In this document: positions 3,771-50,555 of the stretch, one piece after another | Position numbering within the stretch: the first letter of the stretch is position 1 | Layout: each line of letters starts with the position of its first letter | Assembly: GCA_000708835.1 (NCBI GenBank) | Contig: DF237142.1 | Coordinates: forward strand, 3,810 to 67,809 | Reading direction: 5' to 3' | Length of the DNA stretch: 64,000 nucleotides | Source: Klebsormidium nitens | Taxonomy: Eukaryota; Plantae; Klebsormidiophyceae | Made by a program: the position numbers and the translations under genes | The notes under the pieces: model-generated | Told to the model about the DNA's origin: nothing | Database searches by the model: none | Seen by the model: only the letters and a program-made list of their open reading frames with translations

Positions 3771-6700
3771 GCAAGGATTTAGGACAAGCGATAGAACACA
3801 TGGAAGGGCCCCGCACACCGCTCGCTTCTTCCGTAGGGATGCAGTCCGCCCAGTCACAATTGCAGCCCCTTCCTAGTTTCCAACCAGGCAGGTCAGCTGC
3901 CACTGTAGTGGTACCGGGGGTTCCCTCTCCAAGCAAGCAACCACAGGGAAGTAACAAGCAGGGCGCCATCTCGCCCAGGAGCATCCTCCAACAGGGGCCT
4001 GAGATGCCACAGATGCTGGGCCCCCAGAGCGGCACACTCCAGCAGGGGGTGGAGTTCCCCCACATTGTGCCCCCCTACAAGAGCATTGTCCAGCAGGGGC
4101 CAGAGACACCACTGAATGTGCCCCCCCAGATGGTGAACAACCCCCTGAGAGCAGCTCTCAGTGACAGGACAGGTGGCACCCTGCTGTTGGATGCTGTGAC
4201 ATCAGATTGCGGCCACACATTTGGCGGGGCCAGTCTTCAGAGAGTCTTAGCTGTGGTGAGAGATCCACTGATCCTGCTCTTTAGTGGCATGCTTTCTCTG
4301 ATGGTGGCCTCAGCTTCCTTGCGGGAGTGATGAAATTCGCTTGTGTCAATCATTTTAGCTCTGTTGTTCCACGTGATTTGAGCTTTGATTGTCCTTCTCT
4401 TGGTTTCGACGTTTGGATGTGAAGTCTCAGCGAAGACCTTAGCTGAGGAGCTTGCGAAGCACTGATGAAGCAGGCGATACGGTCGGAGGGGGAATGCTTC
4501 ATTTTCTGAGGAAGCTGGTCTCGGGACTGAACTTGGGGAAGGGGTAAAGTTCTCAATGCAGCAACTTTGGAGCAATGGAAGATTCAGTCTCTAGATCGTT
4601 CTGGTCTTCTTGGGTGCTAGGCTCCATTTGCAAAGTGCTGCGGATCAGTAGCGCCTGTCCTGTCAGCAGGAACATAGCACAACAAATGCTTCAATCTGTT
4701 CAGCATTTCTCCCCAGCTCCTCTTGTCTTCCACTCCTTAGATCCTTAATAAGCTTCCAGCCTCAGTGTTCGCAATCGCCAGATATTTTTCACATACTCTT
4801 CTTGAATAATTAGCAAGTCTTGAGATGAGCCTGACCATTGGGTACTCTTTCCCCAGGGCACGTGCGGCGCTTGCGGGGTTCCGATTGACCCTGGACGGTT
4901 GATCCCTAACCTGGCGGTCAGGGCGGCAGCTGCCGCGTTCCAAGCTGAAGAGAGCCTGGGGCTGAAGAGGGGCAGAGACGGGGACCCAGCCCGAGGGACG
5001 CTGCCTTTCATCAGAGTAAGCAGAACCGATGTGTGAGAAGTGGCTTGAGGACTGCAATAACCACTTTCCAACTAGAAGCAAGAAAGTCTACTGACAGAGC
5101 AACGAAGGGTGTTCAGGGCTTCAACCTCGTTGCAACCATATGGAGGCACCCAGTCCGCTTCAAGTGCACTACTCTATGTGCCCGCAGTGCTCCTACATCC
5201 ATGAGCTTGTAGCACTTGTCATTGGTCCTTCCTCTCAAATCCTTGTTCTTCTTTATGCATCACCATCCTTGCTTCCAAACCCCCTTTCAAGAATGGGTGT
5301 GTGCTGGCTTTCGCATCCTCTTGTGCGAGTACATGGACTCTAAGCCCTGCCTCTGGTATCCTGGCACAAAAACGATTGTCAACGGTTGGGTTGGCTTGAA
5401 AGGAGAAGCCATGTCTACACAAGCAAGCCTTACAACCACTGTCCATTGGTTTCAGAGCTAATCAACCCAAGGGTTAAGTAGATAACCCTTTCTGCAGGAG
5501 CCTGAGCAGAAGGCGTACGTCTTTCCCTACAAGCTGCACGACCGCGTGCGCGTCAAGGGGAACAAGCGCACGCCCCCCCATTTCGTGGGCAAGGAAGCGG
5601 TCATTGTGCATGAGGGCCTCAATGGTTGGTACACCGTTCGCTTGAAGGAGTCCGGGGAAGAAACGCGGCTCCAGTACCGATCGCTTGAGGCCCTTTCAGA
5701 TGAGAAGAAACAGCGGGGGAGTGAGAAGGGAGCGGACGGAAGTTTGAAAAAGACGGTTGGGGCTGAGAAGACACCGGAAGGAAAGGAGGTCAGTTTGGAG
5801 GTGAGAAAAGAAGGAGTGGTTACGGCAAAAGAGGGGAACGCAGCGGCTGTTGGAAATGGTGAGGAAAAAGGGGCGGTCGAGGAGGGGTCGAGGAAAAGGA
5901 TCAGGACCGAAGGGGAAGAAGCCGTTCAGGAGAGAGGCGGGGCTCAGACCGGGGGGCAGGTTAGCCTTGGGTTGGTTGGAAACCAGGGGGAAACTGCTGT
6001 GGGAAACCCAGGGTTAGGGGTAAACCAGGGAGGGTTGAGGGCCGCCGCAAAAAGGGAGGGAGCCGAAAAAAGCCAAGGAACTGGTCTTGGATCCAGCAAC
6101 AGAAGCATAGTAGAAAGTGCACGGAGCTTGGAGGGTCAGGAGTCGCTAGCAGGTGTCGAGCCAGTCGTTCGGAATGGTGCTGCGGAAGTTCCTCCAGAGG
6201 CTAGCAAACCCCCTCCTGTGAGTTTCGCGGTTACTTCCGTGTCCCTTCAGGGTGCGAGCGTCCAAGTCGCGGCCGAGGTCCTTCGCATCAGGGGGGGTGC
6301 GCCAAGTGCCGAAAGCCCCAGGGGTTCTCCCTCTCCTCAACCGTGGGGGTCAGCTGGCAGAGACTTCAGCCCCCCGTTGTGGAACCCGGGTCAAGTCAGC
6401 CCAACAGGGACTCGGACGCGAACGGAACGCCGGCCAGTGGTCAATCTGGGATTCCTTGCCAGGGTCAGCGCTGACATCAGCGACGACGAGCGGAGCGTGG
6501 GGCCAAGTTCGGGGAGGGGGGACGAAGAAAGAAAGTTTGAGGGTCGGTGGGACGAAACGAATGCGGGGGGGTCTGATGTGGGTTTGGATGAGGAGAGGGG
6601 CTTTGGGGGCAATGCCGAGAGGGCAGACGCGAAGAGCACGCCTCAGAAGCTGCTGAGCGTGCCGGAAAGGGACCGGTGTGTGAAGTCGAACGGGAGGGGC

Positions 6701-7442
6701 TGGCGATGCAAACTAAGGAAGGCGCCAGGCTACCAGGTAAGCATTTTGAAGCTGTCCACGTCAGAGATGGTCGTTCAACCGTCAGGCAGAGGTCAATATT
6801 GTGCCAAGCCCTTCGTAATCTGCATATAGTGCACTTGACATAGTCGTTCCATCAAAGGCCAGAACTGACCAAGTTGGGGCAGGGTGTTCAGTGCAAAAGT
6901 CCGTTTTGCAAGTACTCGGAAATTTAGGAAGTCGTCGCGGTTAGGCCCGCCGTTATAAACTCAATAGGTAGCGCTCCAATGTTCGAGGAGTAGCAAAGGT
7001 CTTTGGAGGGTTAACCCTGCTTTCTCAGGCGGCTAGCTGTGTCCCTTTCAGCGCAACAGCTTTTGGTGCCAAACAAAAGTTGAGCCTTGAGTCCTCCAGA
7101 TGTCTACTTCAACCCGCAAGGCTATCGTGGATGAGTTCCGTATAACGGGACGGTTCAGCGAATCCTATCTTCTTTGTCACCTGGGTAAACCACTTTGTCG
7201 GCTCTTGCTCAGCTGCTATAGTCTGGCTCTTACTCAGCTTCTATAACCTGGAACCGTGTCTTCCGCAGTATTGCGAACACCATCAGCGGAATTGGGACGG
7301 GCATGAGAAGCAGTGGAAGAAGGCGTTCCCGTCTCCCGAGGGATCTGATCCGCTGCCACCGCAGGGGGGTAGGGTCAAGGTGGCCGGCGCGGGGGGTATC
7401 AAGAGGCCGAAAGAAGGTGGGTGGACGAAGGCCCATGCATGA
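3771..7442 (+). CDS. U-box protein of the plant PUB62/63 type (degenerate U-box plus GNKRTP SH3/KOW-like domain) with an added WRC zinc-finger-like domain
   Basis: Phase-consistent exons: 3771-4255 (LRAALSDRTGGTLLLDAVTSDCGHTFGG), 4857-5015 (GTCGACGVPIDPGRLIPNLAVRAAAAAF), 5498-6736 (FPYKLHDRVRVKGNKRTPPHFVGKEAVIVHEGLNGWYTVRL..LQYRSL; RCVKSNGRGWRCKLRKAPGYQ) and 7269-7416/7442 (YCEHH). The motifs match my recollection of PUB62/63 (LSDP..CGHSFG; GNKRTP..FVG..LNGWY..LQYRSL) and WRC (RC..DG..WRC..YCE.H). The 5' end is uncertain (possible first exon 1799-1862). The 3' end is either TGA at 7440-7442 or a splice at 7416. Confidence 0.85.
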
Positions 7443-26148: not shown

Positions 26149-27638
26149 ATAATGCATATTGAGTAAAGACTGGTTGACCCTTTTTGTCAATGCCTAACCG
26201 CTTGATAAGGCTTTTCTGAGGTCGTTTGAGGCCACCTTGAGAAAGATATGTAGGAGGGGTGAAAATGGATATAGTATACATAAAGATAAGGAAGGTTTTT
26301 TAGGTGATTGTTGTTGTTTTTTATTATACCGTCCTTTTCACCAACTTCGTTTTGTCTAAGAAGCATCTAGAGCAACGGCTTGGTCATGGTGAGAAGATCG
26401 TCTTGAGAACAAAGGCCTTACTCTAAACAACCATATCAGCAACTTTGAGCACAGAAGTATGTCAAGCCCAACACTATCTAGTTGCATATGTCTTTCACAC
26501 AGTGTATTCGCCGGGTTACTCATTCACGTGAAAGCTGGGCATGCATGCAGTGCATGGTGTGAACAAAAGACCTTATCGATCCGGGCTCCTCACTGACTTT
26601 GTTTCACTACCGTCCTCCATGAGTGCACAAATTTGCGCGGTATGTTATTTTTATGAAATTTTGGTGTTCAGTCAGCCTGATTGAACATATGAACATATAT
26701 TCGGTGTTCAATCATGGCCTGATTCAAGAACATTGAAAATATATATTGCCCATATTGCCGCCTGGCAGGCGGCAAACGTCCGCTCACATGCCACTGAGCA
26801 TGGAAGTAGGTATACCCGATCACTCGGAGTTAGTAGCCGCATGAGTCGTTAGTCCCCTAGCGGACCCCGCCCCTAGCCTTCGGATGCGTGCCATAATAAG
26901 TTGAGCTCGGAAATGAAGAGAGGCGCCACAGACTCATATCAACTGCATAGGCTCGAGCTAGCTACTAGCATATAGACTGTAGCAGGACGTGCTGAGCTAT
27001 CCGATCTCATGCCATTGCACCCGGCCCTGCTTGCCTTCAGGGGGATCACCCTGCATACTGGAGCGCGCGCAGTAGCTGTCGTCGTCTGTAACGACAGCCT
27101 GGAAACGAGGTCCAGCGTTACGTTCGATTTCCAACGACTTTTCGAACTGAGCCGGCAACCTTGGCCGAAACGACGCTTCGTCTTCCACTGTCCCTTGAAG
27201 TTGCGGAGTCAAAGAAACAACAGCACGCTGACTCGGAGTCTGAGCGCCTCCGTCAGAGTGATCCGTAGCCTCTTCTCAATATCTTGTTTTGATGCTGATC
27301 AAGAGGCATGAGAAGCTTACCTAAGTAATCAGATGTCTGCACGTAGTGAGCGGCATATACATGTGGAGCCTTGCTTTTTCTTATGAAGTCGCGACAATGG
27401 TCATTGGCTCAGCAGATGGCTGCTGCTAGCTGCGAGTTCTTTTCCGTCCTGCAAGAGCTGCACTTCAAGGCTCTGGGGCCAGCAAAGACGTATTGACGGA
27501 TCTTGCTTATTCTGACACTGCCTTGGTAGCTCTTCCGAAAGCACTGACGCTTGAGTGAAGCCCTAGCTCCCCTAAATAGAAGATGTAGTGTAAAGCTTTA
27601 GCGTGGAGGCCAACCAGCTAGGAACCAGTCACGCAACA

Positions 27639-30600
27639 ATGTTGGCGGACGTGATGGAGTGTGGTGCGACGTGGGTGCAATTTCAAGGTAAGAATAAGTT
27701 TGCAAGGGAAAAACCTCAAGAATGCATGTAAGTGGGATTCCTTTTCAATGCTTCATAGCAATGCAGCTTCTCACAGCTTCTAATCGTTTTGCAGTCCCTG
27801 CATGGTGTGTACCAGGTCGAGTCTTTTTCTGGTTTGAAAATCAGGTCCAAAAGCGCAAGGTGGAGGATTTCAAGGCCAGACATGAAATGCTAAAGTTCTA
27901 TGCAGCTGCTCCGTTTCCAACTGGGACAAAAGGCAGAACCCCCTTCAGGGTCCTACTCGCAGAACTCTTACTTTGATAGGGTGCAGATCCACAAAAACAA
28001 GAATCCGATAATTGATTTGAGGTAGTGAGTTGACCGCACCACATGTCCAGGATCAACAGTCTGTCATATACTGATCAGCTGTCAGCAACATCCTCAAGTG
28101 CTCCATATCTCGTGCTTTGTGTGCAATACACATCACTTGTGTTATATGTAATGGACGTTATAATCTAATTGCTTCTTTGCTGCCTTTGGCTTCCGCGACT
28201 CTCTGCAGGTCATGAAACCCCGCATTGAGCAGCCAAAAAAACCTTCTCGCATCTGCTGATGTAACGTACATTTTCACTGTTCTGCAGACGCCTGTGCAGA
28301 TCTGGCAAGCCACACTGTTGCAGAGCTCTCCCCCGACCAGGCAGCAGAAGCACGCCAGGCGCTTGAAACTCTAGACGTCAGTCTCAGGGAGCTCTTTGCA
28401 GACCCCAACTTCGTTAGTAGCAGCGCTGCTCTTGGAAACCCTTTGGGTGGAGAGCAAAGCAACGCGCCTCAAGATTGTGCACAAAGTTTTAGCGCGCAGA
28501 CACAGGGGCTCAGCAAAGATGCAAGGGTGGATCTTGCAAACAGGTCCTCAGTCTCTAGTGCTTCTAGTGAAGGAGACCACCTAGTTCTGAAACCGGGTCC
28601 ACATTATCCTCCTTCAGAATCAGTCCCCATTACCGTCTCACCCCTTCCCCTCCTCCCAATCCAGAACCTTCTGTCCTCCCCCCTAGCCTGGGTTCGAACA
28701 GCGGGCTGGTTCTCATTCGGGCTGTGCATAGACGCCGGTACCAAGCTAGAATCGGGTCTCCCTTGCTTTATGACCAGACTTTTAGTAGCGGCAATTGATG
28801 GCATTGGTGGAGATCTGGAGTGTCACGAGGCCCTGTATGTTGTGAGGAAGCTTATAGCTTCTGGACTCGATCTCCCGAAGGCCCTGTTGAACGCAGTGGT
28901 GGCATTGGCTTCGGCTTCTGGAACGGGCTGTTTGGATGTCGCCAGCCCCGAAACAGGGCCTCGAAAAGCTGCGGAGACGGTGGAACACGCGACAGGACAG
29001 CGATTGACACCGGACGCGTTCGACGATTGGGACGAAATAGGGCCTTCAATGAAAGTGTCAAGAGAATCAAGCTTTGGTGTCAAGCATGCCTCTCGCAACG
29101 GGTCTCCTACTGGGAGCCGATTGGAAGAGGGGTCTCGGAGCCGGGGGGGTAGCGGACTGAGCGTCGTAAGCTATGCAAGTGACACGTCAGCATCTGACAC
29201 GTCAGCGACTGAGGCGGCGAGAAGTACTTCGGCTAGCCGTGCAGATACGGACGTGGTTAGGAACGGGTCAACAGACGGGGCTCTGTTAGCCAGCCGATTA
29301 TATGGTTCTGGCAGCGCAGAGCAGATTTCTGGGTCAGAAGGGACGGAGTCGTCTCAAAGCAGGCACTGGAGTGCTTGGAGTGACACGAATGGCAACTGGT
29401 CAGAGGAAAAAGACTCTAGGAGCCGGAATGCGAGTGTCAAAAGCTCAGGGAGGGGTGATTGGACTGACACTGAAGCCGGGTCTGAGGGCAGAGCAGCGAG
29501 GAGCAGTGAAGGCAGTGTCAACCACCAGGGGGGAGAAAGGTCGCCAGCACTCAGTCGGTCGAAGCAGGGGTCCTTCCAAAGTGACCCCCCCGAAACGGAG
29601 CTCGGCTCAACCAGAAAGAGTTCAGAGGTTTCGCGGCAGAAAGGAAACGCAAATCCAAAAGCCGCTGAAATTGTCCACGTCTGGGGGGTACAAAGCAGGC
29701 CTGAGGAGAGACCCCCCGGGCCGAAGTGGGAAGCGACCGGGCTTCTGATCGCGTTAATATCAACCGGGCACGAGGGAGCGCTTCTGGTCGCCCAAAGCCG
29801 AGGGCTTTCCGCACTCTTGCGTGGCCTCCAGGAGTGCCCGGGGGATGGCGAGGCCCTGCGGCTAACGATCGCGGCCGCGATCGCACTCCTTTTGAGCGAC
29901 CCCGCCTGCCGCAAGGCCGCTTCACAGGGCCCTTCGAGCGTTCTGGCGCCGCTGGTGTCGCCCTTCCTGGACGCCGCGATCGAGACGAAGCGGATTTCCG
30001 GTGAGAAGGGAGCGGAAAGGGAACTAGAGCGGACTCTGAGGGCGAGCGGAGAGGCCTTGCTGGCAGTGGCGAGGAGCTGGAGCGGGCTGTTTCTGCTCGG
30101 GGGGATGAGGGACGGAAGACGGGGAACGGAAGCCGGAAAACGGAACGGCGGAACGGACGGAACGGACGGAACGGATTCGAACCGGTCGCTGCTCGGAGAC
30201 TTGGTGGTGGCCCTGCGAGTTACCAAGAGCCAGCTTGTGAAAGGTGAGCGCACCAAAGTTGCTAATGCGTGAGCAATGTTCTTGTTAAATATAGCTTGAC
30301 TGCCATTCAACCATCTGGAAACTGATCAGCAGAATGTTGCCTCCATGAAAAGCACACTCGACCTGCATGAAAAGCACACTCGACCGCTGTTTGAAAGACA
30401 TACATGATAACCGCTTTGCCTTTGAGAAAGGGAAAGAAACGTCCCACCCTTCCTTTGGTCGCTTCTATTGAGGGTCTTTCGAACGTCAGAAGTACGTCGT
30501 CGTGGTTCAGAAGGAAAAGCGTTCCTTTCGTTCCCTCGTCCTATTTCAAAGTTTAGGGGCCTACCGCCTTCGAGCGTTTGAGTCACCTTGCGACAACAAG

Positions 30601-33600
30601 AAACAGAACTCAACGGACCTTGCTTTCAAGATAGAGTTAGAGCGACCCAGTTCCGAACACGCTTTGTTACTTTGTCTTGCAGCTTCCATCCTCGCAGTTT
30701 TCGCCGGCCTCGTCTTCCAAACCTCCCCCTCCCAAACCCTTCTCTTAAACCCAGCCCAAACTCCTGTCGGTACGTACCTTTCTGTCCTCTTATGCGCCAT
30801 CAACGCCGCGGGTCTTCCGTCCGCGCTCCACGACCTAACCCTGCAAACGGATTCCGATCCGGCGGAAAACGGAAGACAGAAAGCAGCGGCAAATGGACAC
30901 ACGGCACTGCGGTTGTTGTGCCACGTGGAGAGATTGTCGGCGGCGCTTCTGCCGAGCGTGTTGCGGGAAAGCTCGGAGACTGCGGTGGACTTTGTCGGCG
31001 ACGTCATCAGCCAAACAGAAGCCGGTCTGGGTAAATCAAAATCTACCCAGAAAAGGATAGCAGACGAAACCTCGCTCCTCTGGTTGGAAACGTTTTCCAG
31101 CTCAAAGGAGAGCATGACTTCCTCGAGGCCGATCCTAGGTCATAGTGACTCCGGTCGCCACAGCGCGGACGGTTACCGAAACCTTCTGCAGAAAACCCGC
31201 GGTTTGCGGTCCGCTCACTCTTTGCCCGCCCAATACCGCCTCCCAACGAAGCCGCTCGACGACGCCTCCGAAACGGCCTCCTTCTCCGGCCTGGACAGCA
31301 TCGGCGTCAAAGCCACAATCTCCACTCTGGACAGCACCCGGTTGACTCCCCCGGCCGGCTTTACGGTCCCAGAATGGGACGCCGAAGACCGGGAAACGCT
31401 GATGAGAGCCTCGGGAGTGGTCGAAAAACGGTCGAAGGAGTGGCTGAAGTGGGATTGGGACGTCATCCGGACCATAGTCTCTGGTCCGTTGAGAAACGGT
31501 CCCGGAAAATTCTCTCACGGCAGTAAGTTTCTGAAACGGCTGACCGGATTCTTTGCGAAGCGCCTCCCGGGGCTTTCCCCTGGGGAGGAACCGGGGCGGT
31601 GCTTGGATGTCGGGCGAGAACTAGTAGCGGCACTGTTGGAGACGGACGAGGGCTGCGCGTATCTGAGCGGGCGGGGGAGCAAGAAGAGCAAGCAGGAGTG
31701 CCTGGTAAGCGATGAACTTTCTGTAAGCTATGCGGTACTCGCAAGGTATGACCATTTTCGCCAGGCCATTTGCTCAAATCGATCGGCTTCTTTACGTGTT
31801 GGCCTTATAAGTGCTCAAACCACTTCGTCCAGCAGCAAGTACCTGTAAGATCCAGTTTGTGAGCAACCCTCTGTAAACGAGGGGAGTTGCTCGCCGTTCA
31901 AACGCTCCGTTCAACGAACATGGAATAGAGACGGACACTCGACTAATTTCAGAAGGAGTACCAAATGAGACAAGTCGACGGTTGGCGTGCTTCGAATGAT
32001 TTCCAAAAGTCAGGAAAAGAGTTGCTCTTGTTTCTCGAGAGCTTTCGGATCTGCATCGTGCTCTGTTGAGCTGCAACTGGAACAGACAAAAAGGGCAGCG
32101 GGGATGTTCATGCCATACTTGCTTCCTAGATCGCTCTCTCCCTAACTTTCAATACCTTTCGAGCCCCGCTCCAAAACATTCGTATAGGACATGTTTCGTC
32201 AGAAGAAATTGGAGCGCGTTCAGACTCGTCTTTTACACGCCTTCCGTCGATTATTCCAAAACCCAAGGTCCTGTCTGGTATGCACGTAGAACCCTGCGAC
32301 AGAACTCGTCAACGCCGAAATCCAGACCTTTTCAGATTCCAAGCTTTAACCGCTTCTTCGTCTGAAACCACGAAGAAGATTGATTTCCTCATGGATTCCT
32401 ATTGCTACATTGTTGCTCGTCGTGTCCAGGGATATCTGGGACTTTCTCACTCTGATATCGCCTTTTGCAGCTCCTCGAAGCGCTCGCGAGTGGACTGCGC
32501 GCGGAGCTCGCGCACACCGGCCGCGATTCGAAGCCGCTCTTCAGCCGCGAAAACCTCCGCAGAACCCTGGCGCCTCAGTTCCTGGCCCTGATGCTGACGT
32601 CACTGACGGGAAACGAGCGGGGCAATCTCCTGCTAGAGAAGGCGGGCGTTCTGGCCAGTGTGAAGGCGCTCCTTTCTGGGAACGGGAGGTGAGAGGCAGA
32701 AACTGTAGTCAAAGGGACATTAGGAAGAGTAATTTGAGGCTCCGGCGCGATTACTGGATCAATCTAGTAGATGGAAAAAGAGACGGAAAGTTTTGGAGCA
32801 TCTAATTTTGTGTGTTGAGAGGCTGGATTTATCAGCATCCCAGAAAAGGTAAAGCGTCCGTTCTGTACGTCCCAAGACAAGGGGTTAATTGCATGATCAG
32901 ATCAATCTTTGTGACAGAAAATGATCATCGGAGTCGACTAGTAGTTGAAAGGAGCTTGCGCCCCTCTGTGCATAAGCATCAAGCCGGCCTTTCTTCGAAC
33001 CTCTAAGTCTTCGTTGTTTTTCCATGGCTGGCGGTGAGACGAAGTGTCATCTGACCGTTTGTTCAAAATCTTCGATTGTGATTCCTTCCCGCAGCTTTTC
33101 TTTCCAGAAGCTGCTCCTCCAGCTCATCAATTTCGGAACGGACGGCGACCAGAGACAGGTAAGAGTCCGGACGTCCGAACAGAATCTTCTCCTGATGGTT
33201 GAAATGGTGATTTTTCTAATCAAGCTAAACACTTTCAGAACGTGCTCTTACTGGAGTCTGAGTCTCAATGCTCTGCACCAGATGTTATTGCGATGACACG
33301 TTGCCTTCCGGTAGCGAGTATCTTGAATCCATATCTAAAGGAGAAGCCTTGCTGTGCTTGCTTTCAGCTTTCCCAAGTTGTGCCATGTCCGAACATGTCA
33401 CAATCTCAGGACCGAGTGTCTTCCATGTTCTCCTTTGGCCGCTGCCTGTGACTTGTAACAAAGTCATCAAAGCCTGCACGATGATTCGAACCTCGTGTTC
33501 CAAGAACAGTAAGAAGTCAGTCTTCGGCTACGCATTCGGGACATCGATTTTCCCAAAGATTTGATTGGTTTCAGCGATGATTAGACACGCATACCTTGCT

Positions 33601-36460
33601 ATTGAGCTGGGGTGTCACTCAGTTCGTCCGTCATTCTCCAAAACAGAGAAGACTTCTGCAGACTCCACAAACTTTCGTCGCAGCTTCTGACCGCCGCCAT
33701 GACCAACCCGCATTCCCCATCCGCGCGCGCCTTTGCCGTAACGCACGCAGCGCGCCTCCTGCGCGCGCGCTTCGAGGCTGCGCGCCCGTCGCACGCGGCA
33801 GCCACGGCCGCGGCCCCGGCCGCGCCTTTCGAGCGCTGGCTGATGCAGCGGTTGCTGACGCAACTTTCGGACGGCGACGCGAGCGTACGGAAACGGGCGT
33901 CGGACGCGTTGGAGAGCGGCTGCGCGGGGCTGCAGGGTTTCACGGAGCTTTTAGTGTCTCTCGTGCCACGTGTCGAGGGGCTGTTGGTCGAGGGGGACGC
34001 GCTGGTCCTGGCGGTGCTGGCGTCGGACGCAGGGTTCGAGTTTCTGAAGGTGAGTCAGGCAGATGCATTCGATCTGAACTCGATCGTCGAAGTTACTTTT
34101 AGCGGAGGGGGGATGCTATTCTGGGAAGGTTTCAAATTAGAGTGTGGGGTTGAGATCAAAGGGCTTAACAAAACCGTCTGTCGATTTTGAAATTGTGGTA
34201 AGGACATGGGTTTTCAAAGCAGAGATTACAAACGCGAATGAGGACGGTAGCATATCCTTTCGAATCGCAAGTTGATTCCATAGGGGCTCCAAATGGTTCT
34301 CGACTCCGTTGCTGGACGGGATTGAGTCACCACAAGCGATACTAATCCGGTTGACTGGTTTTGCAGAAACTCGCACTTTCTCTCGCAGGACTCCCGTTGG
34401 TTTTCCACCACGTTGCAGAGTTGGACGAACAACGACTCCACGGGCGGCGCGGCCGCGTACGCGCGCCTCGCCGAGCGCGCAATCTTCCAAACCCTGCTGC
34501 GCCAAACCCCAAACCCCTCGTCAGCCCAAACCTCCCTTCGCGACCCAGACTTCAACCCAGGGTTTGAGGGAGCCAGTTCGGAGGAACGCTTGCCGCGGCA
34601 CTTTCTAGGCGCGCTTGCCGCGAGCGCGCAGGGTTTGGAGGTTCTGAAGTCGTGCCACGTGTTGCGAACCGCGGCGGCGAAGTTGCTCGAATCTGGGGGG
34701 GGAGATCGACGAGGCGCGGCATGGAGCTTGGGACACGTGGCGGCCCGCGGCGGCGCGGCCGCGGTATACGTGATCGAAACGGGGGGTTTAGCAAACCTGG
34801 AAAGGGGGGTTAGAGGGGCGGTTGGGAATCTGGGCCTTAGGGGGACGTTTCTACAGGCGTTGACGCTAGCAGCGGCAAGCCCGGAGGTTAGGACGTGGTT
34901 AAAGGCCCGGCAGTGGGTTACACGAGCGGACAAGGATCGAGGAAATTGCGGGATCGAAAAGAACTCTGGACCGTTGTACGGCAGCTTATTCGACGCTTCG
35001 AACGGGAGCGAAGTTGGGACGTCCGAGAGCATTCCTGACCGGTGGGATTCGGACAGCTCCGTCGAGAGCTTGGGCGGGTTTCTGAAGGAGCCGATTCCCA
35101 ACGCCGAAACGGAGACTGCGTTCTACGACCAGCTCTTTGGGGTTTCGAAATCAAAAGAGATCCCCGCCGTTCCGGCGGAAGCTCGTTCCACGGCCTCCGA
35201 AAGAAAATCGTCGGACAGAGCAGAGGACGCATTGGGGCAGCTGGGATCAGCCGTGCAATACGAGGAAGAAGGGGTTGAAGGAATGGACTTGCCGGCTTGT
35301 ATTTGCCTCCCAAAAGCCACCAGCATCCTCTTTTCTTTGCCCTCGGATCGCGCGCTAGATTGCGCAAGCCGGTATCGCGTGACGCTTCGAGAAGCAACTA
35401 TGGAAGGCAGGAGTCGAGCTGCAAAGATCTTTCCTGAAGATGGTTTAGAAGGAAGAGAGGGCGACCCGTCAAGCAAAGCGACGGCTGCGATGGTCGCCCC
35501 ACCCTTGGAAATGTCTAGCGGAGAACAGAATGAGCTTTCTCGAGACGGAGAGTCTGCCGTTCCTAAGATTGGAGCTTCTGCGGAAATAGGAGGATTCTCG
35601 AGGGAATCCTCAGGCACCGCAGGCGTGAACGGAACGGAACAGCGGACGTGCGGAACAGGCGCCGGCGCCGCCCATGAACCGACCGAGGTCCGGGAAGAAA
35701 AGAAAGCAGTGGCACTGCTGAACGGCTTGTGTAATCCCGTAACGGCGGTGGGTCCTGAATCTTAACCCCTCAACTCCAACCTTACCTTAAACCTCAAACA
35801 TTAAGCACTTACTTTGATGCCTGTCAGAATCTTAAATTTTCAGAGAGGTTACCTTTTTCTGACGTTTAATTTTTGCAGTGCTTCAAGTTTTTGAATGCAT
35901 ATTCTGCTTGCTTTTATACTCATTTCTAACAATTTCAGATAATCAAGATTCAGGGGGGCAAGTTTTCAACCGCTCTCGGCCTTATACTCAGACATGCTCC
36001 TTTCGGCGCTAATCGCTTCATAGAACCACTCGTGCAGTCGAGTTATATCCACTTGGCATCGATAAGTTCGTTAACATCGACCCCAAAAGCGATCATTGCG
36101 CTGGCAGACAACACGAGCGTCTGGTTGGGTGTCAGTGAGACATTTGAGGTGCTCTTCCTTTGGAAGGACTGTCTGTGACGGCGTCTTTCGGAGTCCCACA
36201 TGCCGTGGATCGGTGACGCTAATCATTGCTGACCCCGTCATGCTGACGCGCAACTTTTACAAACCTGACCGCTCAGCCAATTCTGTACGTAGGCTGAGAG
36301 CCGCGCCGATCTGGAGGAGCTGCTGGAAGGGTACCCGCAGCTTCCGGACGGAATTCCGTTCCGGTCAGCAGCACGGACGCTGCTGGACGAATACCACTTC
36401 CCCCGCTCTGTGAGGCTGGCAATCCACGAGATGGGAAGAGGGCGTGCGCACTGGCAATGA
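27639..36460 (+). CDS. RICTOR: RICTOR/Avo3/Ste20-like TORC2 scaffold subunit
   Basis: Phase-consistent exons: 28288-30243, 30683-31704, 32471-32688, 33095-33158, 33684-34049, 34389-35747 and 36293-36460 (TGA); the first exon 27639-27687 is tentative. Colinear motif matches to recalled RICTOR: LVSPFLD..ARSWSGLFLL (RICTOR_N, cf. LAPYTD..FRSWAGIINL); TYLSVLLCAINAAGL..LRLLCHVERLSAALLP; KEWLKWDWDVIRTIV..FLKRLTGFF..ELVAALLETDEGCAYL (RICTOR_M); RLLTQLSDGDASVRKRASDALESGC (REM-like); LPRHFLGALAASAQGLEVL..AAWSLGHV..LRGTFLQALTL (RICTOR_V); LCNPVTAAESRADLEELLEGYP..ARTLLDEYHF..VRLAIHEM (C-terminus). Confidence 0.85.
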
Positions 36461-42926: not shown

Positions 42927-44682
42927 GCTGTCCAAGCTATTTGCGCTTCGTTCTGCACCAGAAAATGTGACTTAGAAGTTAGTGCGCCTTTCTTGGATTC
43001 GAAACTGAAGCGAGCTTTGTTCATGCAAAGATGTAATCTTACTGGCCCAAAGCAATGCCAAAATCGAACAATGGAAGGCAATGGCAATGCAGCGCCAGGG
43101 CTCCAACTCAGCCGAGTGTTTGACTTTTCAACTTCGTGAGTCGTGACTTCACTGTCAGACTTGGCTGCGGCGCGGTAGCTATGCGCCAGTTTGCAGCCGT
43201 CGATTTCGCAGATTTGTAGAGTAGTCCGTAGATATTGGTCACAGAATCACTGCGGCTTACGCGAGTCGTCACCTGCAGAGGGCGGACAAGGAGATCGGGA
43301 CCCTAGCCCGGGGGGGGCTGCTGGAAGGTGCCTGATCTGCAACGTACCTATTTAGCTTGACCAGAGCTCGGGCCAGGTGTGCACTGTGCAGTGGCAAGGC
43401 TCTTACCATCCGATGCACAAATTGCAATCATCGAACGGTGCATATCTCCTCGTCAGCCTTCATGGTTTTGCATCAGGCAGCATTCAGGCTTCGGGTTTGC
43501 CTTCGGGTTAGCTACCGTACGTTTGATTTCAAAGTCGGAGAGGACCTACTACTACTTAGGAACTGGTAGTAGGTTCCTAAGTACTAACCTACTAGCCTCT
43601 AGGTAGGTACCTACCTGGCCGACAGACGACATGCAGGCATCGCAGGAAATTTCAACCTTCCGGCCCGCAGAGTCTGCGTATAGAAGCCGCCCGGAGGCCA
43701 CGGGGCGGACTGGTTCGCTTATTACCCGGTTCGAGACGACATGGAAGGCGCCCCGGCCTGCCCCGGCCTGCCCCGGGCAAGTTTCGATCCACAGCTTCGG
43801 CTAGGAAGCTTCTTGGCCGGCCTAGGTGCTGCGATCAGGCAGTTGAAGTCGCAACTCCCGATCTTTCTCGGCTGCCCGGGTCAGCCTGCTTGCGGCCGGC
43901 GTGTCTTTTTACCTACGGTAATCTTCCCCAAATGATGGTCGACGTGACCTTACCTTTGACTGACGTGAGCTCCGCTTACATAGGTATACGATGGCGAATA
44001 AGGTAGCACTACCTAGTCACAACCACATGCCACATGGCCACATGAACATGACCACATGGCCACATGAAACGCACTGCACGTACCTACCTAGACATTGCAC
44101 AGTACGGGCTGCGACAGACGTCATCTTTACGCCGTACGCGTCATGATTGGTATTGCCGCCAGGATTTAGGACATCATATGACGGGCAGCCAGCTTCACTA
44201 AGGCATCCATCGGACGGTGATTTCTGCAGGCATGTCGTTGATCGAGGGAAAGTGAGCTTTTCCAAAAGTTTCTGACAAGAAGTGTTGCCTAATCAAGCTG
44301 AGTGGCTGCGGCTGCAGTTACGAGCGCCAGGGTTAAGAACCTATCAGTCACGCAAATTACGGCACGGATGCTGGCTTTGAAGTTGAAGTGCCGCAGCGCT
44401 CTAAGGATTCAGGAAGCTCTGTGAGGGCAACATGCATCATTCATGCTTGCGAGGTTTGGAGTTCACCTTCAAGTTTTAGATGGCGGGCTAGCAAGCGGTG
44501 TGACCACGTGAGAGGGAGGGTGAAGTTGTCTTTTGCCTGTCGGTGTTGGCTCTTTCTTGGTCGCAATGGAGGTGACAACCCTAAAAGAATCGATGCAAGG
44601 CTCCCGCGAATACCCGGCGGCTTTGCTGCTAGGTTTCTTCCAAGCTCGCAACATTATAGGTCGATGCTGGTAGTGAAGATCA

Positions 44683-47600
44683 TTGGACAGGCACGCTTGC
44701 AGTTGCGCTGAAGCAATGTCACGAAAAAGCCCTGTAAAGGGCTCGTTTGTACAAAGATTCATTCTGCTCCACCTCATTTCGGCTTTGGTCTGGTACACAC
44801 AGCTCCTGGATGCACAGGCATTGCCCAATAAAGCAGATGCAAAGAGTGCTGGAAATGCAGCCGTGGGGCGAAAGGCTCCAATCCCTATAGACGAGCCGTT
44901 TGAATGCTTCCCTGAGAAAAACGAGGATTGCTACTTCAACAAATACTCGTCTCCCATCTGGCCCGAGGTCCGGCGCAATATGAGCGCGCTGACTCAGCGC
45001 TGGCAGACCGTCGCGTTGGAAAAACCTCCCTATCCCGAGGGAAAATATCACGGGAGGGGCATTGCAATCTCCTGCGGTCCCAGGGGGATCAACAACCTTC
45101 CTGTCCTTTTGAGAGTGCTACGCGACATGGGGTGCAACCTCCCCGTCGAAATCTGGCACCTGTCGTCGGAGAGTCTGCCCTTCGAGCACGCCGGGTGGCT
45201 CGCAGGCCACAAGAACGTCATGCTGAAAGATCTGCTCGAGTATGCCAAGGATATCGAGATGGTCGAGACGAACGTCGGCCCGCGCATGTTTGCAATCAAG
45301 CCGCTGGTTCTCCTGCACAGCTCCTTTGAGGAGGTGCTGCTGCTCGACGATGACAACCTGCCGCTCCGGGATCCGACGTACTTGTTTGAGTATCCGCAGT
45401 ATAAAGAGTCGGGGGCGATTTTCTGGCCCGATTACTGGCGGACGAGCGCGTTGAATCCAATCTGGGACCTCGTGGGGGTGGACCCGCACGGGTATGAGCA
45501 AGAGAGCGGGCAATTGCTGGTGAACAAACGGAAGGGCTGGGCCGCGCTTGCTGTGGTGAGCGATCTTCTTTTCCGTTCTCTTGAAGCTTTCCACTCTGCA
45601 CGATTTGCTTCTTCAAGTTTTTAACCGTCCCGTCACGTCAAAGCTTTTGGGAAAACTTTTCTCCGTCCCGCACTTATATGATATGAGATGTTCCAAGATC
45701 AGCTTTTCTGCTGGATGCACCAGTGTCTTGCTGTGTGCAGAGTCAAGCTTCTGGAATGCGTGGCGCCAGGAAGCTCTTGCTTCCAGCGCACAGCCGGCAG
45801 CAGTCTGCATTACGTCAGGGGAGGGCAGCCCTTTCTTTATCTTTGAATCAAGGAGGCCGATTTGTGGAGGGCATTCAATTTTTTGTTGCCGAGGGAACAT
45901 TTTCTGAACATTCTGACTTTTCATCCAGATTCTGACATTGTCATGTCGTGTTTAAAAGATCTCGAAGTCAATGAGGCGACAACGATCGCTCGGCATAATC
46001 AGACACATTGCCTAGCACACCAATGGCTGAGGAATGCACGAGCGCAGGCATTGATGTGACAGCTGGGCTCGTCGTATTTTGTGCAACTCCTTTTGCTGAG
46101 GGATCCCTTAAATTTTCAGACACCTGATGTTCAGAAATCAGCAGCAAAGGTCAGAGGGCGTAGGACCTGACTGAACAAACATTGGGCGCATTTGCTCAGC
46201 CAGTATAGCCCTTGGGGAAGACAACATCAAGTTTATCAGATCCAAGACGCTGTTCTGTTTGTTGTTTGAAGTGGGGCTTCCTGATTGTTGCTTGCGGTGT
46301 GTGGTGTTTGCACATCTGCCTTGGTTCGTCTCGTACTTGCATAAACACAAAGGCAAACAGACTGGTCCATTAGAGAATGGACATTTCTTGGAATCTTGGT
46401 TGCCTGTGCACCGAGGATCTTCAGATCTTCCCCTCCCAAGCTTCACGAGTTTGGTCCTTGTATGTGCCTAGGCTGGTGTCACTTGCCACTGAACAGTCTG
46501 GATGGGACAACTTTCGGAAGCAAGAGACGAGAGACTTGTAGGATGCACTGGCCCTGCTCAGAGGCTTGATTTGAGCAGATTGACTTTGTTGCACTGTGTA
46601 TCCGATCGAGCGGTTCACTTGAGTTCAAGTTGCCCCCTTCTGGCAGATCTTAATGCTTTTCTAAGTGACCAGTTCTTGTGTTTCATTCTCTCCCACAGTG
46701 CCTCAGTCAGCAACATCTTGATGAACTTTTGATTGCATTTGCCTATACACAGCCTTACTACCCAGTATTGGATCCATCACTGTTTCAATTGTTGGGGTCT
46801 GATCTACATTGGATTTTGTTGTCCACACCCAGAATCTGCTTCTGTGTCCGCTTTATTAATACGTTTCGGGTGCTTGTGTAATGCGTGGCGGCTTCTGCGA
46901 AAGAAGCCTCTCGCTGGTATCGCCCCGCCTCTGGTTTGCTCTTCCAATCATCGATCTTGTTTCATCCTTCACCGTCTTGAGTTTTGCTGACATTCGGCTT
47001 CAGATTGTTGGCAGACCAAATAGATAGGGCAGACAAGCAACAGGCGAATCTGTGAAACGTCACGGTCCAGTCAATGGTAGTCAAGAAGTCAATGCACTAG
47101 CGTCTGGGAAGCCAAGTGACCAGCCAACTTGTGGCCCCTTCCACTAAACATCGTCTGCCTACATTCAAGGGGGACATTGCATGCAATCTCTAATCCTGCG
47201 GCACGTTGAGCAAGGATTCCTCTGTGTTTTACGCTTGGCACCTTGCAGACCTGCGTCTCAATGGGGGACGATGGCTCCCGACTTCTAGAATCATAACTGC
47301 CAGTAAAACATTGGAACTTTGAGCAGATGGATTGTGCGACAAACAAGGAGAAGCGCTCTCAAAAGCGCCTTCACTAAGTTGACACTAATCCTCGTGCTGA
47401 CTCTGCTTCATCGCTTTCTGTGTGCAGACACTGCTGTTCAACCAAGCGCCTTATAGATTGGTAAGCCTGCCTTCTCTTTTTTTCTCTCTCTCCTTATGAT
47501 GGCAACTCACTCTGTCTTTTTTTGTTCCTTGCTTGCCGAGAGCCATGTTGCTATTGTCTCTTGAGTACAGTGCAGATTTAGTTGTTATTATCTTCTGGCA

Positions 47601-50555
47601 AGGCGTTGACAAACCTAGAAGTATGACGGCTTGTGGCCTTTCTTAAGCAAGCTGTTGGTGATCTCTTCCTTCTTGTGCGACATTCAAGATGGATGTTCGG
47701 AGAGCAAGGAATCGCAAAGGTCAGATTGTGGTTCTCTGCGGCGCTTCATTCTTGAATGTTAGAATGCTCACATTCGCTACCGGGATGTTTGAACCGAGAC
47801 TGGTAAGGGGCAGGGTCGTCGTTGTTCGGATTCAGGATAGTCAGACATGAGACTGAGACTTCCGGGAGTCTTTTGAGTTCCTTTCGATGACAGCACATGA
47901 CAAACTCCCAAGTAATGATTGGTCAGGTCGTCATTCGCCCATCCTCAAGAACAATAGCTGTTCAGGCTTCCTTTTAGCGTTCTCCCTCGTCCTCGCTTCT
48001 TTCTTGTGTTCAGCGTTTCATGGGATGAGGGTCTTCTGGGGTGCCGTTTGCTTCTTTCCATCGTTCAATCAACCGCTCCATTAGACGATCTGCCTTGTCG
48101 AGTCTGCCTAGGTTTGGAATACTGCAGACGGCTTGTGAGATTCCTGCCGCTTATACGCATGTGTTCCAAGCGGATTGCTTACATCAGCGGCCACTGACAT
48201 TTCGTGCACTTCGTTGTCTCCGCCTTTTTGCCTCCTATTTGTCCTCGCTGGAAATCCCAAAATCAGTAGCCGATGCACAACTCTCATCTGAGTTCCTAGA
48301 TCATCGTCCGACCCCTTCAGGCCACCTCATCAGTCCCCCTCGAACAAGCATTTGTAGGAGAGCAGCACCTCACAGATAGAATGAATACCAGAGACGCACA
48401 TTCCGAGATGCGCCGTCCTCTGAGCTTTCCCCGTCCATCTACTCTGACGCAGCATGACGACCTGACGAAACATGACGACGGGCATGCACGCCTCTCCCTG
48501 ACCCCTTGCGTCTCACGGAACTTTTGGGAAAGCTCTGACTCTTCTTTCTTCCGTTCCTCAAACGGCGACACAAATTCAAAAACTCAAGAGAAGGAAAGCG
48601 TGTGCTGCTCTTGCCGGCAGCTTCTCCTATCCCAACCATCCGGAGGCCTGATCGGGAAAAGGACCCTGACATTACTTTCTTACCACCATAGTTCCTTTTG
48701 TCCTCAAGCGTGAACCTTTTATTGTTTCTGCAGCTTTTGGTGAGTAAGAAAGACCTTTGGCTTTCCGTGAAAAGATGTGCGGCGCCCTCCGCAGCTCGAA
48801 GAAGTCACCGTCTCTGAAAAGGGTCGGATGTGCCATTTAGTATTCGCAGTCCTTGAATGGAGACAGAAAACACGACCCGCTTTGCCCGGATAGCCGTGGA
48901 GCACCCTCCGTAGCTCCGAGTATTTGAAACTTTGCACCTTGTGGAAAGCGATGACGGCGCACTCTCTCTACTGCAGCTCTTGAAGAACGAAGCTGAGGGG
49001 CATCATTATAGCAGTTGCACGTGAAGCACCCTCTGCGCTTTATATGCTCGGATTTCCACCAAGCTTCAAACCCGGATTGGTGCTGTCTCTCCTTGCAGCT
49101 ATTAGAAGGCGACAAGGGCACCTACCCCTTTGCGTGGTTGGCCGAAATAGCCCCCACGGTTCCCAAGTTCGTGAATGTTGATTTCTGAACAGTTCTTTCG
49201 TTTTGGATGTATGTTTCCTCTATAGATCCTCTTCCCAAAGCTTCGCACACGGGACACCGGGTCTCTCTCTGTGTGCAGTACATTTCTGACGGCAGAGACA
49301 CACATCCTTTCGTGTGAACGGCCGCGGACAAATTCTCCGCAGATCCATAACAAGACCCAAACCATTGCCATGGCATCCCTGCAGCTCTTGATTGTCGACA
49401 AGGACTGGTACCGCTTTGCGCGAGGGGTAACGAAGCACCTCCGCAACCCGGTGCTAGCAAGACCCAAAACCAACTGAAAACATGAAGGACATTTCATTTG
49501 CCTCTGCAGCTCTTGAAAGCCGACGAAGGCAGCTACCACTTTTGCGTGGTTATCTTGAACAATCCCCTGCAGCTTAGCTCAGAAAAGACTCAAAGCGTTG
49601 AAGCGTACTGATTCACCCCTCGCAGCTTCTGAACGGCGACAAAGACACGTACCGCTTTGCGTGGATGGCGGTCAAGCAGCCCTTCTCGTTCGTGCGGCAA
49701 CCGATCGGTACGGCGGGCATGGTCGACTCCAAGAAGGAGCTGTGCGGGACGACCATGGTGCAGTTCGATCTGGACGGCCACGAAATCTTCCTGCACCACA
49801 ACATGCTCAAATCGGGGCCGTTGAAACGGGCGGGGGCGAACTGGGCGGAGGCGAAGATCCCGGTAATGGGGCCGATGGAGAAGTTCAAGCCGGTGCCGGG
49901 GGATGCGTTGGAGTTGGCGGACGAGACGAGCATCAACTGTATGGATATCAGTGGGCGGTATGACGTCAAGTTGCGGCCGTTCAAGGAGTTTGAGGAGAAG
50001 TACTTCGACTCGCACGAGGTGTTGACGGAACCGTGGCTTTTGACGAACACGACGGAACGGTTCAAAGTACCGTTCCCGGAGGACTCGGTGCTTGCGGCGA
50101 TCAAGGGGGTCAACTTGAAGGGGACGTCGACGCACGAGCTGAGCTTCCCCGCGCCCAACACGACCCGGTTAAAGATCGAGTTGACCATAACCCATGTTCA
50201 AGAAGAGGGGGAGACGGCCATCGATCCGTTGTGTGAGTCCAAGGTTTGGGTTGACCAGGTGTTGTTGCCATTGGGGCGGTGCTCGGCGATTGGCGCGGGG
50301 TATGTGGGGAAGACGTTTTTCATGCACAACAAGTCGTACCATAAGCTGCTGAGCAGGGATACAGGGAAGGGGATGTGTAGCAGGGTTTTTGAGCTAACGG
50401 CGCAGCCGTTTACGGGGGTGATCACGAAAAAGGCCGTCAAGTTGCGGCTGTGTGGATGGGTAAAGAGCGTCAACGCTGTAAGGTGTTTAAACACCAGCGT
50501 GAAGCTGCACATGCCCCGATGCAGGGGTAAACCTATGCAACCGGGATATATATAG
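44683..50555 (+). CDS. GT71 / MNN2-MNN5-like alpha-mannosyltransferase (Mannosyl_trans3 family)
   Basis: Exons: 44683-45555 (hydrophobic N-terminal anchor; GRGIAI..LPVEIWH; KPLVLLHSSFEEVLLLDDDN..DPTYLFE..SGAIFWPDYW; EQESGQLLVNK), the 33-nt micro-exon 47428-47460 (TLLFNQAPYRL) and 49626-50555 (LLNGDKDTYRFAW..CGTTMVQFDLDG..FLHHN..K). These are characteristic GT71 motifs. The start may instead be 44716, and the extreme 3' end is uncertain. Confidence 0.88.

Follow-up and report, generated by a model that had tools for sequence, protein, structure and literature searches.

The 64,000-nucleotide stretch of Klebsormidium nitens contig DF237142.1 analysed here (the window) carries on its forward strand a gene that we read, with a probability of about 0.8, as a functional nuclear gene of the host alga for a highly divergent orthologue of RICTOR (Avo3/Tsc11 in yeast), which is the defining scaffold of TOR complex 2 (TORC2). 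The family is a known one, found in a lineage where it has been described as lost, rather than a new kind of system. Several long stop-free stretches lie between 27.6 and 36.5 kb on the + strand, and Pfam scans were performed on these stretches separately and then on the exact exons. The best family for each stretch is RICTOR-specific, and the matches follow one another in the order of RICTOR proteins: RICTOR_N, RICTOR_M, RasGEF_N_2, and RICTOR_V (Table 1). This is the block order that a first-pass annotation of the window had proposed.

When the eight exons are assembled and translated, the reading frame runs from ATG 27639 to TGA 36458-36460 with zero in-frame stops. The spliced open reading frame (ORF) of roughly 1,700 residues that had been predicted between these positions, free of frameshifts, is thus recovered with identical start and end and a length of 1,733 residues. 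All seven introns are bounded by GT..AG and measure 339–766 nt. RNA evidence comes from four sequencing runs (X1–X4) labelled as the window's own organism, in which 38–49% of the sampled words of 28400–35800 are present. RNA contigs were aligned over 27600–33599, where all match the window at ≥99% with zero differing letters. They contain four GT..AG junctions, each observed in two or three runs: 27687/28288 (X1 and X4), 30243/30683 (three runs), 31704/32471, and 32688/33095 (X1 and X2). Because the contigs carry spliced joints, the runs contain spliced RNA of the RICTOR gene. Introns 1–4 are therefore seen directly, and the small exons that had been suspected between 27687 and 28288 are dispensed with, as RNA joins the two positions directly. 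Intron 5 is placed by a 26-nt loose end of RNA after 33158, the sole match of which in the window is at position 33684. The five RNA-supported exons read through in a single frame.

The last two introns were placed by conservation. At intron 6, protein similarity to the related loci L003 and L004 (described below) ends at the donor GTGAGT at 34050 and restarts after an acceptor ending at 34388; the donor GT occupies 34050-34051, so that exon 6 ends at 34049 in phase 0. At intron 7, similarity to the same two loci ends at GTGGGT 35748 and restarts at 36293. For both introns, the frame is kept by these sites only. Two other acceptors considered for exon 7, 34367 and 34419, were dropped because they are out of frame; 34389 fits.

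At the 5′ end, the RNA contigs over exon 1 reach beyond 27600 in the upstream direction by 388 nt or more (X2 record 6), which implies either a long 5′ leader or extra upstream exons, so that both 5′ end and start codon are provisional. If the RNA is colinear with the genome in this part, ATG 27639 is the first start codon after an in-frame TAA at 27591. A search of the related loci for a conserved exon 1 or for further upstream coding exons found none.

Two local features of the gene were also recorded. At 31522, in exon 3, an RNA contig from X2 only is without 2 nt, which would shift the frame; X1 and X3 are without the deletion, and the gap probably reflects a misassembly at low coverage or an infrequent variant. 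In intron 2, positions 30340-30383 are a tandem duplication of a 22-nt unit, perfect to 95%; an examination of the RICTOR introns for larger repeat arrays found none besides this duplication.

The strongest family match is that of exon 6 to RasGEF_N_2, a RICTOR-specific family, which passes the gathering threshold of 27 both in the window and in the L003 ortholog (35.7 bits). The same match to RICTOR_N is obtained in the L003 ortholog (27.0 bits), and PF14664 appears as precomputed annotation on two orthologs, P0001 and P0007; in exon 2, the RICTOR_N profile is unmatched outside its positions 142-234. Profiles built from ortholog alignments were then compared with the sequences of solved structures in the PDB. 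For exon 3 (alignment A2), the top match is chain 9rsq_C, yeast Tsc11/Avo3 (E = 6.1e-4), and the aligned segment spans the W-x-W and KF.KRL motifs. For exon 6 (alignment A4), a single stretch aligns to human RICTOR 742-818 (E = 0.035), which is the RasGEF_N_2 region of that protein. In searches with language-model features, the nearest clusters to residues 1-215 of exon 7 are RICTOR_V (score 0.95, 186-187 shared features); the same searches with exons 6 and 3 returned generic HEAT or unrelated clusters only. The blocks in exons 2, 3, 4, 6, and 7 keep the canonical N-to-C order within one polypeptide. Taken together, several RICTOR-only families in order, a RasGEF_N_2 match over threshold in two taxa, and an Avo3 match in a non-repeat block identify the gene as a RICTOR homologue, albeit a very divergent one.

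A number of observations weigh against this assignment. Only one of the four matches passes its curated Pfam threshold: RasGEF_N_2 does so, whereas RICTOR_N, RICTOR_M, and RICTOR_V, which the first-pass annotation had also named, fall below, RICTOR_N narrowly and with a significant E-value, and the RICTOR_V match is insignificant by sequence. Introns 6 and 7 are placed by conservation and reading frame rather than by direct RNA evidence, which the provisional start codon also lacks. In the PDB search, designed HEAT-repeat proteins outscore human RICTOR for the exon 6 profile, and the exon 2 and exon 7 profiles, whole and trimmed, gave no RICTOR match. The exon 7 profile instead matches designed armadillo (ARM) repeats, through a repeated A-x-W-x-L-G motif. 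AlphaFold2 models built from alignments of three to four sequences are poor (mean predicted local distance difference test score, pLDDT, of 38 for exon 7 and 32 for exon 2), and a fold search (VIA-align) with a low-confidence model returns generic ARM repeats at Z ~12; human RICTOR 826-1003 comes 35th with Z 10.9, a result that agrees with the assignment but does not discriminate. Finally, the C-terminal block, formed by exon 8 and the last part of exon 7, is without detectable similarity to any family or PDB chain.

Much of this could be accommodated by a generic ARM/HEAT-repeat protein that matches the profiles by chance or through its repeats, as the three sub-threshold Pfam matches, the preference of the RICTOR_V-like block and of exon 6 for designed repeats over RICTOR, and the dominance of generic ARM repeats in the fold search would all allow. 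We consider this highly improbable. Each of four separate exons has a different RICTOR-only family as its top match, in canonical order, and one of these families is over threshold in two taxa; the block that matches yeast Avo3 does so at the homologous position and is not a repeat (E = 6e-4); and exon 6 aligns to the part of human RICTOR where RasGEF_N_2 lies. A rather improbable alternative is that the gene descends from RICTOR and no longer works with TOR, its ARM/HEAT scaffold having been re-used in an alga without TORC2. In solved mTORC2 structures, the C-terminal domain of RICTOR contacts TOR near FRB, and it is in this TOR-contacting domain that similarity is undetectable; the extreme divergence from known RICTORs and the large lineage-specific insertion in the ARM domain point the same way. 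Yet the blocks that are still recognisable are the RICTOR-specific ones, their order is kept, and they are the most constrained parts of the protein.

Five related loci allow the gene to be followed beyond the window. L004 is a Logan assembly of SRR23617307, L001 and L002 derive from SRR14092359 and SRR14092358, L003 is an 88-kb Joint Genome Institute (JGI) metagenome contig, and L005 is another JGI metagenome contig. Since L001, L002, and L003 are mutually 92–95% identical in DNA, they are counted as one taxon. Exons 2–8 are present, ordered and stop-free in L003 and L005; the shorter L004 contig runs from the last part of exon 2 to exon 8, whereas L001 and L002 cover exons 2–3. Protein identity between L004 and the window is 66–88%, exon 2 is 55% identical to its orthologs over its whole length, exon 7 is 74% identical between L005 and L003, and exon 8 is 81% identical to L004 and 48% to L003. 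The ratio of nonsynonymous to synonymous substitution rates (dN/dS) is 0.33 against L004 (dS 0.42) and 0.29 against L003 (dS 1.2), falling to 0.13–0.25 in the RasGEF_N_2 exon. As judged from these ratios, the gene is under purifying selection.

The relatives also keep the same neighbour, a GT71 (Mannosyl_trans3) gene: ORFs of L003 and L005 are 67–75% identical to the window segments 44764-45558 and 49629-50540. In L003 and L005, this gene lies tail-to-tail with RICTOR, whereas in the window it has the same orientation as RICTOR and lies 8 kb away with other ORFs between; the differences in orientation and spacing suggest a local inversion or insertion. Open exons, a neighbour shared with the relatives, and the dN/dS values together exclude a pseudogene and show, by sequence comparison, that RICTOR has been resident in this algal group for a long time.

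The same evidence makes a contaminant or a chimeric assembly, in which a fungal or protist RICTOR was joined to algal sequence, very unlikely, to the point of being almost negligible. GT71 mannosyltransferases are best known from fungi, which would suit a foreign origin. A 2025 survey found, in addition, that unexpected matches to TOR components in green genomes were often contaminants. Against this, the 64-kb window is gapless, with no N, and carries a plant-type PUB62-63_C domain; RNA runs labelled as the organism contain the exons with zero mismatches; the gene and its neighbour occur together in three related taxa, whose Logan and JGI assemblies are independent; and the ARM-block scan described below found no close homologue among well-sampled non-green groups. 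The earlier judgement that contamination is improbable thus holds. It had leaned on PUB62-type and WRC genes on the same sequence, of which the former is borne out: in a 447-codon stop-free stretch, PUB62-63_C (PF23112) matches residues 13-68 with E = 2.8e-24. The WRC (PF08879) match at residues 393-416 is weak (E = 5.4e-4, 20 bits) and under the Pfam threshold of 28.6.

How the alga came to have the gene was approached through searches for outside relatives. An exhaustive HMMER scan of the ARM block against 1.84 billion representative proteins returned only P0001, the cluster of the relatives, and a spurious repeat protein. Word-indexed homologue searches returned only three clusters each, which are ORF fragments of the three related taxa, under a length filter that excluded full-length RICTORs; two scans of metagenome_contigs gave no match. 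As the 1.84 billion-protein scan found no similar protein in well-sampled potential donor groups, a recent transfer is excluded. An older acquisition, in which an ancestor of the algal group gained a true RICTOR by horizontal transfer from a non-green eukaryote, is possible and on balance unlikely. Large surveys report RICTOR to be absent from other Archaeplastida, so that a single gain would require fewer events than many losses, and in the protein databases searched RICTOR of this type is confined to a narrow group of related taxa. However, no candidate donor is visible in the ARM-block scan, and the gene has the character of its host: it has seven host-type introns, and its GC content at third codon positions (0.655) falls inside the range of neighbouring ORFs (0.56–0.80), with exon GC at 0.605 versus 0.463 in introns. 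The GT71 adjacency is moreover common to taxa that have diverged to dS ~1.2, and raw scores of 186–342 with the RICTOR hidden Markov model (HMM) in three chlorophytes (PMC12467227) hint that the gene is more widely distributed among green organisms. The more economical reading, though not a demonstrated one, is that the gene was inherited vertically from the eukaryotic ancestor and was lost several times in other parts of the green lineage. The broader proposition, that a complete ancestral TORC2 was kept in a green alga with plant-type genes and that the losses occurred repeatedly within the green lineage instead of once at the base of Archaeplastida, seems to us about evenly balanced.

Table 1. 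Features of the RICTOR gene and its surroundings. Coordinates are those of the window unless a related contig is named.
Feature	Coordinates	Strand	Description
RICTOR coding region, whole	27639..36460	+	8 exons, 5,202 nt, 1,733 aa
Exon 1	27639-27687	+	16 codons plus 1 nt; start codon provisional; 3′ junction from RNA
Exon 2	28288-30243	+	N-terminal helix and ARM-domain blocks, split by long serine-rich insertion; RNA contigs tile the exon
Exon 3	30683-31704	+	End of ARM domain, linker, conserved W-x-W / KFLKRL block (four-sequence alignment); both junctions in RNA
Exon 4	32471-32688	+	RICTOR_M match at 32525-32674; both junctions in RNA
Exon 5	33095-33158	+	64 nt; 5′ junction in RNA; conserved in L003, L004, and L005
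Exon 6	33684-34049	+	RasGEF_N_2 match at 33828-34046; start from RNA loose end, end from conservation and frame
Exon 7	34389-35747	+	RICTOR_V-like ARM/HEAT block at 34710-34916, then mostly disordered region with conserved motifs; boundaries from conservation and frame
Exon 8	36293-36460	+	Conserved C-terminal 55 aa and stop codon; acceptor AG 36291-36292; no family match
RICTOR_N (PF14664)	29784..30098	+	Exon 2; profile 142-234; 27.2 bits, E 2.5e-6; gathering threshold 28.5
Tsc11/Avo3-like block	31363..31665	+	Exon 3 ortholog profile; yeast Tsc11/Avo3 729-834 (9rsq_C)
RICTOR_M (PF14666)	32525-32674	+	Exon 4; 18.6 bits, E 1.6e-3; gathering threshold 27
RasGEF_N_2 (PF14663)	33828-34046	+	Exon 6; RICTOR-specific; 35.0 bits, E 1.9e-8; gathering threshold 27, passed
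RICTOR_V (PF14668)	Exon 7	+	11.7 bits, E 0.31; gathering threshold 27
Serine-rich insertion	28935..29723	+	~260 aa, predicted disordered; inside exon 2; from alignment and motif scan
R-x-R-x-x-S motifs RSRGGS, RSRNAS	29136-29153, 29418-29435	+	Invariant in window, L003, and L005
PUB62-63_C domain (plant) and weak WRC match	5486..6826	+	447-codon stop-free stretch; Pfam; ~22 kb upstream of RICTOR
GT71 (Mannosyl_trans3) gene	44677..50552	+	Pfam
GT71 gene in L003	L003 13507-20321	-	Tail-to-tail, ~0.9 kb after RICTOR stop
GT71 gene in L005	L005 13441-20289	-	Tail-to-tail, ~0.9 kb after RICTOR stop

The insertion that splits the ARM domain is rich in serine; in the AlphaFold2 model, its pLDDT is low and it forms no secondary structure. 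The RNA contigs show that it is transcribed as exon sequence. It is poorly conserved overall except for islands, among them two R-x-R-x-x-S motifs (Table 1). Motifs of this form resemble the consensus of basophilic AGC kinases, and one may speculate that the two are kinase target sites and that the lineage-specific loop is phospho-regulatory.

RICTOR and SIN1 bind TOR and LST8, set the substrate choice towards AGC kinases, and make TORC2 insensitive to rapamycin. By analogy with known RICTORs, the most likely function of the algal protein would be that of a TORC2 scaffold. Like its counterparts in animals, fungi, and amoebae, it would use its ARM and HEAT-like domains to bind TOR and LST8 along with a SIN1-type subunit, and the resulting rapamycin-insensitive, TORC2-like complex would phosphorylate kinases of the AGC family. 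Such a function requires a SIN1-type partner, and the existence of a TORC2 complex in the alga is something that we only infer.

The green lineage has been described as having TORC1 only, with RICTOR and SIN1 absent, in sources of 2011, 2017, 2022, 2025 (>450 Archaeplastida genomes), and 2026, and a recent model connects autotrophy with a loss of TORC2 at the root of Archaeplastida. The statement of the first-pass annotation that plants and green algae are regarded as lacking both subunits is therefore still current, and in the searchable literature to 2026 RICTOR has not been reported from any plant or green alga. One survey reports TORC2 to be wholly absent from Archaeplastida; it lists no scores for Klebsormidium nitens, and Mesostigma, Chlorokybus, Mesotaenium, and Prasinoderma were left out (PMC12467227). 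A green alga whose RICTOR is intact, expressed, and maintained by selection contradicts the claim that absence is complete. The loss scenario also has to be revised, towards several later losses or an ancient regain, and whether photosynthetic green organisms have a second TOR complex becomes a testable question. If a complete TORC2 has indeed been kept, a relative of land plants would offer a rapamycin-insensitive branch of TOR signalling for study.

Other photosynthetic eukaryotes have been credited with RICTOR homologues. Those of Bigelowiella natans, Ectocarpus, and Nannochloropsis have been taken to indicate a possible TORC2-like complex in some algae (PMC9664231, PMC12467227). They are set beside the present gene here by description, and they belong to rhizarian and stramenopile lineages with secondary plastids, whereas the present gene comes from a green alga, a member of Archaeplastida. 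Closer in phylogenetic position are three chlorophytes for which raw RICTOR HMM scores are listed in Supplementary Table 1 of the survey (rows 805-808): Cymbomonas tetramitiformis (342 bits, with 109 for SIN1), Chloropicon roscoffensis (186), and Chloropicon primus (193) (PMC12467227). Their RICTOR calls are given as NA (absent), and the text is silent on them (PMC12467227). These are likewise green-lineage proteomes, known here from the table scores alone; the scores may point to retention that was overlooked in the same way, and, having been set aside by the published survey, they deserve re-examination.

The closest comparison is with RICTOR/Avo3 (Tsc11)/Ste20, the TORC2 scaffold of animals, fungi, and amoebae. 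Unlike these proteins, the algal protein is very divergent, its C-terminal domain has no detectable similarity to theirs, its ARM domain is divided by a conserved serine-rich insertion of ~260 residues, and its host is a green alga, in which the family has been reported absent. What it has in common with them is the overall plan. It belongs to the same length class (1,733 residues, compared with 1,708 for human RICTOR and 1,430 for yeast Tsc11 in the PDB chains); it contains an ARM block, the W-x-W/KF.KRL block, RICTOR_M, RasGEF_N_2, and a RICTOR_V-like block in the same order; and its matches fall at homologous positions of yeast Tsc11 (729-834) and human RICTOR (742-818).

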